From NCBI GenBank assembly GCA_004431415.1, contig QPMI01000678.1, positions 1 to 55,249 of the forward strand: a stretch of 55,249 bases of DNA, given 5' to 3'. The translations under genes and the position numbers were made by a program. The notes beneath the pieces were generated by a model that had not been told where the DNA came from, did not search any database, and was given only the letters and a program-made list of their open reading frames with translations. Origin of the DNA: Cyanophora paradoxa CCMP329. Taxonomy: Eukaryota > Plantae > Glaucophyta. The stretch's first letter is position 1; each line of letters opens with the position of its first letter. Positions 17,758-37,900 of the stretch are shown in pieces.

Positions 17758-20700
17758 ATGTCGTCAGACGTGCTCGCACTTGTCAACTTCTACGCAAGAG
17801 AGGGCCTATACCGACATCTGCAGACGGTATGCTCGGAAGTGCTGAAGAAGCGGGCCGGAGAGCCCACGCTCATGTTCTGGCGCGCGTATGGCATGGTTAT
17901 GGAAGGTCTGGCGTCTAGCTGCGCGGCGGGCTCGCGGCTCGCGCGCAGGGTCCGTCTGATGTGCTCTGGCGCAGGGAGCGTGAACGAGGGCATCCGCGAG
18001 TATGAGCAGCTGCTAAACCGGAAGGAGATTGCCCTGGCCGTTTATGCCGGCCTGGCTCACGCCCACCAGAACAGCCGGACCGTTGGTGCGTGGGCCCTCC
18101 CACCTCATGGCCCTGCCGCCCAGCGCCGAAAGGGCCGCCCGCAGACCGCGAGGCGTTGCGGGACATGCAGTCGAGGATGCAGGCCGAGGAGCGGGTCGCA
18201 CCGGAGAAGGCGCTGCTGCAAGCGGCGACGCTCCTCTGGCACACGAAGAGCTTCGACAAGGCCCGCGACTACGCCAACCTGGTGCGTGCCGCGCGCCCCG
18301 CGCACGGCCTTGCGCGCCTGTCGCGGCGCCCCCCACCGACGCGCTGCGCAGGCGCACCAGCAGGCGCAGGGCGCGAGCGCGCAGGCGCTCATCCTGCGCG
18401 GCTGGATCGACCTGACGTGCGGGAAGCAGTCCTACGCGGACCGCGCGATGGAGTACTTCGACAAGGCGCTGGACGCGAGCGCGCCGTCGTCGTCGCCGGT
18501 CGGGGACGCGCCGGCGCCGCGCAAGAAGGAGCTCGAGGCGCTGCTCGGCAAGGCCAAGTGCCTCGAGCTCAAGGGCCAGTACGCCCCGGCGCTGGACGTC
18601 CTCACCCAAGTCGTCGTCTCCTACGGCTGGTTCCAGCCCGCCCTCACCGAGAAGGTCCGGCCCCCGCCGCCCTGCCCCGCGCCGCCCGCGCGGGCCCCGA
18701 GCCTTGGGCGCAGGCGAAGATCCTGCTGGCGATGAACAACTGGGAGGAGGCGCTGGAGACGGCGCAGCGGGTGCTGGCGAACGACGGGCAGAACATCGAG
18801 GCGCTGCGGGTGGCGGTGACCTTCGTGCTCGTCCGCGAGGCGCGCTACAGCGTCGCCGCCGCCCGCGCCGCCGACCTCCTCGACGCCATCGACCGCCTCG
18901 AGCCCAAGAACGCCATCGTGCGCCCCGCGCGGGGGCGTGCGGGCTTGGGGCGGGCGCCGCCTGACGCGGCCGGCAGCTGTACACGACGGTGGCGCGGCCG
19001 CTGGCGCGCATCGCCGGCCGCAACGCCGCCGTCCTGCAGCACACCGAGGCGATGCTCGACCGGGCCCGCAAGATCAGCCCCGACAGGCGAGGCCGCCCCG
19101 GCCCCCGCCCTCCGCCGCCCCGCGCTCCCGCACTGACGCCGGCCCGGGGGACCGCAGCGCGGAGGTCCTCACGGAGTACGCGACGCAGCTGCTGATGACG
19201 GGCAACCTGCAGGAGGCCGCCAAGGTGCGGGCCGCGCGGGCGGCCCCCGGAAAGAGTGGAGTAGCTCAGCGTTTTCGCGCGCGCAGGCGTTCCGGCAGGC
19301 GTCGAAGGTGGACGAGACGTCGACGGGGGCGCTGTACGGGGTCATCAAGTGCCAGATCCTCTCGGGCTCCCTCGAGGACGCCGCCCAGCAGCTCGAGTTC
19401 CTCTCCGAGATCCAGGCCCGCCCGCCCGCCCGCCTCGGCCCCCCGGGCCGGCCCCGCCCCACCCCCCGCCGCCTCGCTGACGGGCCCCGCCGCGCAGCAA
19501 TCGTTCGGGAAGTCGCCGGACATGGCGCTGCTCTCGGCGATGCTGGCGTGGCGCAAGGAGCGGAACGCGGAGCAGGCGGGGCAGCACCTGAAGGAGGCGC
19601 TGCGGATGCACACGCAGTCGGTGAAGGGCGTCCCCATGGGCCACGACTTCTTCGTGCAGTACAACCCGGACTTCATGGTCGAGATCGCCCGCGAGTACCT
19701 CCAGCACAGCGGCTCGGAGCCACTCGAGGCCGGAGAGCAGGCCGGGCCCGCCCTCCGCCTCGCCATCTCCTGCCTAGAGCAGGTCATCCAGAAGGTCCCC
19801 GGCCTGCTGGACGCCCAGCTCACCCTGGCCCGCGCCCGCTACATCGCCAACGACACGGACGGGGCCCAGCGGACGCTCGCCGTCGTGCTGCGGCTGGAGC
19901 CGGCGCTGGCGGACGCGCACCTGCTGCTGGCGCAGATCCTGCTGAACCAGGACAAGTTCAAGCAGGCCGGCCAGGCGCTCGAGCAGGCGCTCGCGCACGA
20001 CTTCGGGGTGCGGGACGTGCCGCCCTACCACCTCATCAAGGCCCGCGTCGCCGAGGCGCAGGGCGACCTCGAGGGCGCCCTCAAGATCCTCGAGGGCGCC
20101 TTCGGCCTCCCCGGCGTCCGCACCGCCGGCCGCGGCGGGCCCGCCTCGGCCTCCTTCAAGCGCGCCGAGAAGGCCGGCGCGGCGGCGGGGAGCGGGGCGG
20201 CGAAGGCGCCGCAGCCGGTGACGCTCCAGGACCGGGCCTCGATCTACCTGGCGCTGGCGCGCGTGCACACGCGGCTCAACCACATCCACGAGGCGACCAA
20301 GGTGATCGGGGACGCCCAGCACGAGTTCAAGGGCACCACGGAGGAGACGCGCGTCACGATCGCCAGCTGCGAGCTCGCGCTGCAGCGGGGCGAGGTCGAG
20401 GCGGCGCTCTCCATGCTCCGCTCCGTCCCCGCCGAGTCCCCGAGCTACGTCAAGGCCCGCACGGTGATGGCGGACGTCTACCTGAAGCACCGGAGCGACC
20501 AGCGGGCGTACAAGGAGTGCTACCGGGAGCTGGCGGAGCGGACGCCCACGCTGCAGAACCTCGTGGCCCTCGCCGAGGCCTACCTGCGCGTGCAGGAGCC
20601 CGAGCGCGCCATCGAGACCTACGAGAGCGCCCTCAAGCGCTTCCCCCAGGAGGCCTCCCTCAAGTCCCGCATCGGCCCGCCCCGCGCCCCGCGCCCCGCG

Positions 20701-34900: not shown

Positions 34901-37900
34901 CCGTCTGGAGCTGTGCCTGACTCGCGGGGCAGGGCCACCGGCTGAAGAACAGCGAGGGGAAGCTCTTCCAGGCTCTCGTCGACTTCCGCACCGACCACCG
35001 CGTCCTCCTCACCGGCACCCCGCTCCAGGCCCGCCCCCAGCCGCCCCGCCCGCCCGGACTACTTCCTCGTTCGCCTGAGGCCGCCCCGCAGAACGAGCAG
35101 CGCGAGCTCTTCAACCTCCTCCAGTTCCTGGACCCCGAGAAGGCGCCCCGCCCCGCCCCGCCCCGACCCGCCCCCTCCTCCGCGCTGAGCCTTGCCGGCG
35201 CAGTTCCGGACCTTCGGGGACTTCCAGATGAACCTCGAGGGGGAGGACCGCGCCGTGCGCCCGCCCGCCCCCCGCCCCACGCCCCCTCCTCCCTTAGCTT
35301 CCGGGGCGTGCGCAGGGCCAGATCGCGCGGCTGCACGAGGTCCTCCGGCCCCGCATGCTCCGCCGCATCAAGAAGGCGCGCCGCCCCCCCGCTTCCCCGC
35401 CGCCTCGCGCCCCGCTGAGGGCGGAGCGGGGCAGGACGTGCTGGGCTCGCTGCCCCCCAAGGAGGAGTTCATCGTCCGCGTCGAGCTCACCCGCCGCCAG
35501 CGCGACATGTACAAGGCCCGCCCCCGCCCCCGCCCGCCCCGCCCCCGCTACCTCTCGGTCGTCTCGATTCCTCTAACCCGCCCGCAGAACATCTTCACGC
35601 GGAATTACGAGGCGCTGAGCAAGGGCGTCAAGCGCGCCGGCACCGTGCGCCGCCCCTCCCGGCGACATCCCCCCTCCTCCTCAATGCCCCCCGGGGTGTA
35701 CAGGTGGCCTTCGGGAACCTTGTGATGGAGCTGCGCAAGTGCTGCAACCACCCCTTCCTCTTCGAGGCGCCCCTCAACGAGGCCGCCGCCGCCGCCGCCT
35801 CCAACCCCGCCGGCCCGCCCCCGCCCCCTCCCCCTCTCTCCGACCTCTTCTGCCTCGAATGACGCCCCTCGCGGGGCGGGCAGAGCTGGACCGGCTGCGG
35901 ATCGAGTGGTGCGGGAAGCTGGAGCTGCTCGACCGCATGCTCGCCAAGCTCAAGGCCCAGGTCCGCCCCGCCCCGCCCCGCCAGCCCGCCCCCGCTCGCC
36001 CCGCTCTTCCCTTCAAGTCCCGGCGCTGAGCCTTACCCGCAGGGCCACCGGGTCATCATCTTCAGCCAGATGACGCGGTGCGGGGGCACGGGAGAGGGGC
36101 CCCGGCGCGGCGCGCTGCGGGGCGTGGCCTGACGGGGGCGGGGCGGGCGGGGCGCAGGGTGCTGGACATCCTGGCGGACTACTGCCGGGCGCGGGGCCAC
36201 GAGTTCGAGCGCCTCGACGGCGGCATCGCCTCCGCCGAGCGCCAGGCGAGCGAGCCCGCGCCCCTCCCGCCCCTCCCGCCCCTCCCGCCCCGCCTGATGC
36301 GCGGCGGCAGGCGGCGATCGACCGCTTCAACGCGCCCAACTCGCCCGACTTCATCTTCCTCCTCTCCACCCGCGCCGGCGGCGTCGGCATCAACCTCGCC
36401 ACCGCCGACACCGTCATCATCTACGACTCCGGCACGCTCCCCCCGGCTTCCCGCGTGGGCCCCCGCTGAGGCCGCGCAGACTGGAACCCGCACAACGACA
36501 TCCAGGCCCTGAGCCGCGCCCACCGCATCGGCCAGGAGCGCAAGGCGCGGCCCGGCCCCCGTCCCCCGCCCCGCACGGCCCGCGGCCTCTGAGCGCGCGC
36601 CGCGCCGCGCCCGCAGGTGATGATCTACCGGATGGTGACGCGGCGGACGGTGGAGGAGCGGATGGTGCAGCGCGCCAAGTCCAAGCTCACCCTCGAGCTC
36701 CTCCTCGTCAAGAAGCTCGACGGCGCCGGCCGCTCCATGAAGGCGCGCCTCCCCTCCAATCCAGTTAAAGCGGGGCGCCTCTGACGGGGCGCCGCCCCCC
36801 GCAGGAGAAGGAGCTGGAGGACATCCTGCGCTTCGGCGCGGAGGCCATCTTCGCCGAGGAGGCAGAGGCGGCCGCCGCCGGCGGCGGCGGGGGCCCGGGC
36901 GGGGAGGGCGCCGCGGGGGGTGCCGGGGGCGCCGGACCCTCCTCGGGGGACCCCGACAAGGGCGACCGCATCTACTACGACGACGCCGCCATCGACAAGT
37001 GCGCCCCTTGCGGATAGTCGCGGGGTCGAGCCCGGCCGGGGCCCTTTTCCCCCTCCTCCCCCGCCTTTCTCTCCCCGCCTCGTTACGGAGCCGCGCCGTC
37101 CGAGTACGCGGCGCGCGCTATTGGTTCGAGGCCAGATTCCCCCGCTCCCCCGACCCATCGCCCCCCGCCCCTCCTTTCCCCTCCCCTCTCCCTTCCTCCT
37201 CCCGCGCGGGGGCTCAGGTGCGGGGGCGCCCCCGCAGGCTGCTGGACCGCTCGCAGGAGGCGCTGGAGGAGAAGGCCGAGCAGGAGAACGAGTACCTCGG
37301 CTCCTTCAAGGTCCCCGCCCCCGGCAACCGACCCTCGAACCGGGCTGAGCGGGGCTTCGTCTCCCGCAGGTGGCGCGGCTGTGGCAGTCGCGGGCGGAGG
37401 GCGAGGAGGGGGAGGCGGAGGGCGACGAGGAGGACCTCGGCGCCCTCGACGAGGAGGCCGCCCCCGGCGCCGGCGGGAAGCGCCGCGGCCGCCGCCCCGC
37501 GGGGCGCCCCGCCTCCTCCTCGGAGCCCGAGAAGCGCTACTGGGAGTTCCTGAAGGAGGGGTACGAGGAGCTCCAGGCGCGCCGGCACGCCTCGATGGGC
37601 AAGGGCCAGCGCCGCCGCAACGCCGTCGCCAAGTACGCGGAGGGCGGCTCGGGCTCGGACTCGGAGGTGGGCGGCTCGGAGAGCGGGGAGAGCTTCAAGC
37701 CGGCGGCGGAGGAGGAGGAGCCGGAGGAGGTCGAGGAGGCGGCGACGGTGCGGGAGGCGGGGCGGGGCAAGAAGGCCGCCCCCGCGCCGCCGCCGCCCAC
37801 CGCCGAGTCGCTGGACTGGGAGAGCGGGCCGGAGCACCCGCTCCTGGAGGGGGCGGGGAAGGATGCGCGGGTGCTGGGGCTCGACACGAAGGAGCGGGGG

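Follow-up and report, generated by a model that had tools for sequence, protein, structure and literature searches.

What decides, at a synonymous site, whether a codon ends in G or in C? The question is raised by a 55,249-nucleotide (nt) contig of the glaucophyte alga Cyanophora paradoxa CCMP329 (QPMI01000678.1, assembly GCA_004431415.1; hereafter the window), along whose exons an earlier note, made from the letters alone, had described a near-digital switch from G-ending to C-ending codons. We find that the choice between G and C in these gene bodies, where ~97% to 99% of four-fold degenerate sites carry one or the other, is set mostly by position within the exon and not by the amino acid. 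The resulting wave, a G-block followed by a C-block in exon after exon, is real and is probably genome-wide. The window is gene-dense eukaryotic DNA of 70% GC, with short introns (median 65 nt) that have GT or GC donors and a CTGAC-type branch site ~20 nt before their end; for the C. paradoxa genome, 67.6% GC, 9.2 introns per gene, and a mean intron length of 86 bp have been reported (PMC6704402).

Gene models were curated with a gene finder whose training ignored whether a four-fold site carries G or C; the curated set comprises 110 exons of 10 genes on both strands, doubtful or frameshifted stretches being excluded. Database searches were run exon by exon, and joined models were compared locally with fetched sequences. 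The main statistics cover 85 exons from the bodies of 10 genes, again on both strands, the decile profile covers the 76 body exons of at most 310 nt, and clustering was judged against shuffles of four-fold sites within exon and amino acid. The genes and exons first needed are as follows:

17758..23100, forward strand: TTC21B/IFT139 gene, 20 exons, 1351 amino acids, wave in exons 3-20; model backed by RNA-contig joints and a mollusc orthologue
18714..18917, forward strand: TTC21B exon 5, a G-block of ~110 nt, then a C-block of ~94 nt
31942..40302, forward strand: CHD3/Mi-2-like remodeller gene (PHD-PHD-chromo-SNF2 helicase), ~45 exons, wave from ~33100 on
36617..36742, forward strand: CHD exon with 10 G-ending, then 16 C-ending four-fold codons

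The TTC21B protein is 43% identical over its full length to the mollusc orthologue, and 15 joints are listed in putative-RNA contigs at this gene, 14 of which agree with model introns and none of which was seen in the DNA run. For CHD, Pfam Helicase_C falls on exon 36311-36430, the PHD and chromo domains were read off the translation, and the model is uncertain between 39007 and 40021.

Adjacent four-fold sites agree in 69.4% of pairs, compared with 53.1% in the within-exon, within-box shuffles (z = 17.7), which rules out chance or amino-acid composition as the cause. The first exon half is the G-richer one in 72 of the 85 exons (p = 5e-11), the first three four-fold sites are 72% G and the last three 13% G, and the G share by exon decile runs 0.74, 0.73, 0.73, 0.64, 0.51, 0.40, 0.28, 0.19, 0.09, and 0.19. 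All eight four-fold boxes shift the same way (the CTG share is 76/100 near acceptors and 14/114 near donors), and codon positions 1 and 2 show no comparable G-to-C shift (p = 0.18 and p = 0.49), in agreement with the proposed non-protein layer at synonymous sites. Both exons that had been singled out recount exactly, TTC21B exon 5 with 19 G-ending and then 15 C-ending four-fold codons and the CHD exon as listed; chosen post hoc, they have within-exon reordering probabilities of 1.1e-10 and 1.9e-7, respectively, and are among the cleanest. With a median purity of 0.88 in two-block fits, the switch is strong but seldom digital.

Across TTC21B orthologues and neighboring genes at nine other eukaryotic loci, clustering z ranges from -1.9 to 2.2. 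Two of the orthologues have a GC share of 0.97 and 0.93 at their four-fold sites, and their z values are -1.9 and 2.2, which rules out a generic effect of high GC at third codon positions (GC3). The mean excess in 44 high-GC3 open reading frames (ORFs) of prokaryotes and viruses is 0.02 (maximum 0.11), versus 0.12 to 0.28 in the long exons of the window. No skew autocorrelation was found in the transposable element-like or intergenic DNA of the window (1-6000 or 25300-27900). A purine/pyrimidine or keto/amino wave was rejected as well, the rare A/T sites, few in number, following neither. The region 1-6000 is GC-rich and resembles a degenerate retroelement, with gag/zinc-knuckle-like ORF pieces recognized by eye, and is free of the wave.

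How is the wave tied to introns? The exon C-block continues across the donor into a C-run that occupies the first 30-40 nt of the intron (~63% C); the skew crosses from C to G roughly at the branch point, G equals C only past the branch site, and the signal resets at the branch point or acceptor. The pyrimidine tract of the intron lies upstream of the branch site. A typical example is:

19416..19497, forward strand: gene-body intron with a GC donor, a C-run in its 5' 40 nt, a CTGAC branch site, and a balanced or G-richer end

Mean intron skew is -0.43 in the 5' half and -0.14 in the 3' half, in that order in 62 of 77 introns, so that the earlier description holds for the C-rich 5' half, whereas the 3' half is merely less C-rich and not G-rich. 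In a set of 64 gene-body introns there are 44 three-tier C-tract motifs, which are G-quadruplex motifs on the template strand, and (CCCCG)n-like runs that yield such motifs stand directly past donors, for example at 20675-20745, 21876-21948, and 34858-34932. Two introns are exceptions to the usual pattern: 52629-52697, in a channel gene, has a long C homopolymer and (CA)n, and 36043-36157, which follows a 35-nt exon, is unusually G-rich.

Does the wave have a ruler of its own? G-block length grows with exon length (slope 0.61, r = 0.78, n = 70). The shortest exon-plus-intron unit measures 104 bp, the commonest length is 135-165 bp, and 26 of the 72 units are shorter than 147 bp; units and cycles together range from 104 to ~410 nt. 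The constant nucleosome-like period once proposed is contradicted by these lengths, and the fixed ~150-bp unit that marks yeast nucleosomal signatures is not found. The wave does, as had been claimed, continue in long exons:

19498..20674, forward strand: TTC21B exon 9, 1177 nt, intronless, four G-then-C cycles
21047..21699, forward strand: TTC21B exon 12, 653 nt, weaker internal cycles with C-to-G flips near 21209, 21338, and 21521
37370..37969, forward strand: CHD exon of 600 nt, internal C-to-G flip near 37649

In long exons the blocks persist more than 100 nt from both ends (z = 9.3), and without an interrupting intron they alternate on their own at ~100-250 nt each. Hidden introns in the 1.18-kb TTC21B exon are ruled out by spliced contigs (putative RNA runs), which span 19495-20667 unbroken. 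Its C-to-G flips fall at 19885 (19852 in an alternative estimate by a hidden Markov model, HMM), 20179, and 20461, close to where they had first been placed, and its G-to-C flips at ~19626, 20023, 20313, and 20557. The long-exon autocorrelation that the earlier note had proposed shows a trough at 120-180 nt and a peak at 270-330 nt, and intron-dense stretches peak at ~150-170 bp. The long-exon period is suggestive only, because a random-switching model gives P ~0.01-0.07 for its peak, which depends heavily on TTC21B exon 9.

The wave also has a direction. Its polarity is self-complementary, while its amplitude goes with transcription: whichever strand carries the gene, C before donors (85% and 86%) outweighs G after acceptors (74% and 75%; p = 0.002 and 0.03), so that the signal, said earlier to read the same on both strands, does so in polarity but is no perfect palindrome. 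The wave strengthens over the first 1-2 kb of a gene: neighbor agreement climbs from 0.55 to 0.72, and the A/T share of four-fold sites drops from 20% near the ATG to 1.4% past 2 kb. The 1328-nt first exon of an SLBP-like gene shows almost no G/C clustering. GC donors become more frequent with increasing distance from the ATG, from 0/20 (<500 nt) through 2/16 and 6/23 to 19/44 (>2 kb), and this rise of GC-AG donors in step with GC3 suggests that GT donors, too, are converted by an AT-to-GC drive in gene bodies. At the other end of the gene, a C-block precedes the stop codon, where no donor stands, in every last exon of the curated set (7 of 7) and in 3 of 6 additional genes, even where the 3' untranslated region (UTR) is not C-rich (CHD and HMG).

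Several of these features would suit a chromatin footprint, in which the wave would be the palindromic signature of positioned gene-body nucleosomes, each strand being G-rich in the 5' half and C-rich in the 3' half, and introns and gene ends would lie at linkers or nucleosome-free regions. The G-then-C pattern is self-complementary, blocks continue without introns, and the wave builds up beyond the promoter-proximal 0.5-1 kb and stops at gene termini; the mode of exon-plus-intron length and the intron-dense autocorrelation are near nucleosomal values, the ~300 nt of long exons being roughly double. Paramecium introns favor nucleosome edges (PMC8997360), and in yeasts an asymmetric palindromic pattern shapes codon use and can be recoded synonymously (Quintales 2015, PMC4422121; Gonzalez 2016, PMC5088595). 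The yeast signatures, however, have a fixed 150-bp frame, appear only in aggregate, involve all three codon positions, and occur intergenically too, whereas the wave is variable in length, is confined to codon position 3 and introns, and is absent from the non-genic DNA of the window. In Tetrahymena, too, the composition of coding DNA is periodic and biases the choice of synonymous codons, but there it is GC content that oscillates under DNA-guided nucleosomes, by 3-4% in a ~200-bp wave that follows the transcription start site (Beh 2015, PMC4617968); here G alternates with C at constant GC, the amplitude is tens of percent, and the signal is weakest near the 5' end. That over a third of the units are shorter than 147 bp, yet single cycles reach 260-410 nt, that long-exon cycles measure ~300 and not ~150-200 nt, and that the wave is polarized by transcription all speak against a footprint, which we regard as rather unlikely.

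The ramp and the GC donors also bear on a neutral, neighbor-dependent substitution process, in which a strong gene-body AT-to-GC drive would act together with a transcription-linked G/C transversion or repair that favors the locally commoner base; intron C-runs and acceptor ends would seed domains, and long exons would form their own. Such a process would account for the scaling with exon length, the sharp walls between blocks, and the free domains within long exons. The wave also increases together with GC3 and GC donors, and the folding and decoy tests described below show no functional gain. No mutational process known to us, however, acts on G versus C over 50-100 nt, the link to the skew of the adjoining intron is weak, pre-stop C-blocks occur despite 3' UTRs that are not C-rich, and internal blocks are slightly more regular than random switching. 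We judge the process unlikely.

A third possibility is an RNA-folding code, with the blocks kept either to pair and so juxtapose splice sites or apart to weaken local hairpins; complementary blocks folding the pre-mRNA had been among the first proposals. The minimum free energy of exons is -44.8, compared with -44.6 and -44.7 in full and wave-preserving shuffles (64 exons), which is no excess stability, and pairing across the exon midpoint does not exceed that in shuffles, wave-preserving ones included. Predicted donor, branch-site, and acceptor accessibility and ensemble energy are unchanged at 62 introns. Sequence-specific hairpins and better splice-site access were rejected on these results, which showed no gain over shuffles. 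In favor of folding, shuffles form slightly stronger local 40-nt structure than the real exons (p = 0.02), the downstream exon takes up more pairing with the intron C-run (6.3 versus 4.5 pairs, p = 0.03) and the upstream exon less with the intron (p = 0.0015), a rerouting that composition predicts, and CGCG, CCGG, and GGCC are depleted (z ~-5). All of these effects are explained by block composition alone, and we consider a folding code quite improbable.

Periodic gene-body signals have reportedly been found in other GC-rich algae, namely the DNMT5 linker CG methylation that Huff and Zilberman are said to have described in 2014 in Micromonas, Ostreococcus, Emiliania, and Aureococcus. That system shows CpG periodicity at the nucleosome repeat; none is seen here, the observed/expected CpG ratio being flat at 0.94-1.2 around splice sites and the CpG count being at the shuffle level. 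Periodic modification, whether DNMT5-type linker 5-methylcytosine (5mC) or N6-methyladenine (6mA), would fit the ramp of the wave from the promoter and the rise of some 5mC at the ends of expressed genes in C. paradoxa, where, however, 5mC lies mainly on repeats and silent genes and gene-body methylation is absent (PMC12344493); the species also lacks AMT1/6mA (PMC12695648 supplement). The DNA-modification footprint suggested at the outset is not supported. Relics of lost introns could instead lie behind the internal flips: flip 21338 coincides with an intron position in an unrelated orthologue (L051), and the HMM estimate 19852 sits 2 nt from a mollusc intron. For five of six internal flips, nevertheless, the closest of 37 mollusc introns is 18-65 nt away, which is near the chance level, and on this ground lost ancestral introns were rejected as their source; internal cycles of 130-390 nt also exceed typical exons (median ~87 nt). 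Modification and intron relics are both highly improbable. Only 5 of 19 TTC21B introns share their position with the mollusc orthologue (L053; 37 introns), so that many may be lineage-specific gains or mollusc losses.

For each of four readings, namely a fixed nucleosome ruler, a methylation footprint, specific hairpins, and intron relics, one or more direct tests came out negative, which leaves a gene-body signal that is oriented by transcription and reset at exon boundaries. As its cause we favor, tentatively and at less than even odds, selection on nascent-RNA processing, because the reset tracks the splice architecture and because Ectocarpus has this polarity in weak form (PMC3787667). Weak selection on many synonymous sites would keep nascent RNA C-rich at the points where processing machinery takes it over, the 5' splice site and the 3' end, and G-rich just past the acceptor. 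C- and G-binding proteins might then take the wave as a diffuse cue to exon polarity, or the effect might be physical, C-rich RNA forming weaker RNA:DNA hybrids and the G-rich template possibly slowing RNA polymerase II (Pol II). Support comes from the reset at nearly every intron regardless of exon length (72/85), length scaling, the eight-box shift, polarity with transcription, the continuity with intronic C-runs, the pre-stop C-blocks, and the absence of the wave off-gene.

Other observations weigh against selection on nascent-RNA processing. Long exons contain internal cycles that no splice site anchors, predicted splice-site accessibility is unaffected by the wave, and introns in the first 500 nt are spliced despite a weak wave. 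Decoy donors near real donors are not reduced (8 versus 8.7), and decoy avoidance was rejected as a function. The wave is no stronger at weak donors (G before GT 41/275, before GC 24/189; p = 0.59), contrary to the idea that it marks exons whose donors are weak, and exon-end skew is not significantly correlated with adjoining intron skew (rho 0.11 and 0.17). Finally, internal cycles, pre-stop C-blocks, and the 5' ramp fit chromatin or a self-reinforcing substitution bias about as well.

In mammals, exonic splicing enhancers (ESEs) drive codon skews at exon ends, and intronic G-runs and C-rich tracts are associated with hnRNP F/H and PCBP/hnRNP K, respectively. The likeness lies in a splice-linked constraint on synonymous sites near junctions, but ESE trends are mostly symmetric, purine-rich, and motif-sized, whereas the wave is antisymmetric and its blocks measure ~25-250 nt. 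Closer is Ectocarpus siliculosus, in which four-fold sites avoid C at 5' exon ends and G at 3' exon ends (Wu et al. 2013, PMC3787667), with CTC, GTC, and ACC favored at 3' ends and GTG, ACG, CGG, and CTG showing the opposite (PMC3787667). The polarity is the same, G after acceptors and C before donors, but in Ectocarpus it is a "somewhat" antisymmetric trend, seen in aggregate and with exceptions such as CCC. Here it is seen in single exons, in all eight boxes, inside long exons, and before stop codons, and it scales with length; the blocks fill whole exons and do not decay inward from the ends. The wave may thus be an extreme, whole-exon form of the Ectocarpus antisymmetry.

Full-text literature searches, which cover papers outside subscription, did not find the pattern described in glaucophytes or algae. 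The earlier note had suggested an undescribed system; the polarity itself is already on record in weak form in Ectocarpus, and we regard the wave as a new, extreme form of a known type of constraint. More far-reaching would be a genome-wide G/C block code, maintained by selection at most synonymous sites in gene bodies and with its own ruler of ~150 or ~300 nt, that couples chromatin or Pol II progression to intron placement; no known system has this form, and we consider it possible but on the unlikely side. The step from pattern to function is one of inference, and one window cannot separate the leading readings.

The effect is large enough to be read in single exons, which turns a weak statistical trend, as in exon-end codon skews and nucleosome signatures, into one testable gene by gene, in a culturable alga with published methylome data. 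It is relevant to the question of which process, splicing, chromatin, or mutation, shapes synonymous sites, and to that of the sites of intron gain. Gene prediction could also draw on it as a strong signal, so far unused, in a genome whose gene structures its authors describe as difficult to model, and it matters to transgene design.

Further genes that carry the wave lie on the reverse strand:

13657..17429, reverse strand: ciliary Ig-domain gene (CFAP221/CFAP65-like; Pfam Ig_CFAP65_4th), same G-then-C polarity
40438..42250, reverse strand: alpha-tubulin acetyltransferase (Mec-17/ATAT1) gene; exon 42047-41796 carries the wave, and a C-block precedes the stop codon
44205..46122, reverse strand: LpxB gene, wave stronger towards the 3' exons
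46621..48543, reverse strand: SLBP-like gene, assigned from its translation, last exon G-then-C
50610..53566, reverse strand: putative six-transmembrane cation-channel gene (CatSper-like), assigned from translation only, wave in short exons

The window holds ciliary genes together with an LpxB gene. Internal flips in the CFAP221/CFAP65-like gene lie near 16111, 15000, and 14803, and the 407-nt exon 51662-51256 of the CatSper-like gene is a single G-then-C cycle; the translation of the latter points to a CatSper-like six-transmembrane channel in a flagellate alga. Some otherwise intact genes show what look like frameshifts of a single base within GC-rich runs, at ~13985, 15687, 33563, 39007-40021, and 50800; these are probably assembly errors.

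Two protein searches and a profile search returned no close relative, the best identities being 46-62%. A metagenome scan for the same intron style gave three prokaryote-like chance matches and one short eukaryotic contig, and a viral scan gave single matches only, taken as chance. The metagenomic eukaryotic contig (L010:1-1226) has closely similar short introns, with a GTGCGC donor, a C-run, and CTGAC. Elsewhere in the window, the intergenic stretches 25600-26440 and 8500-9030 contain short palindromes and self-templated repeats and are AT-richer than their surroundings, and a G-rich tandem repeat of ~30-40-nt units occupies the window end (54780-55249). A direct repeat of ~75 nt at 10790-10870 and 11910-11990, reported as flanking the C-rich region 10430-10700, possibly represents the ends of a small mobile element.

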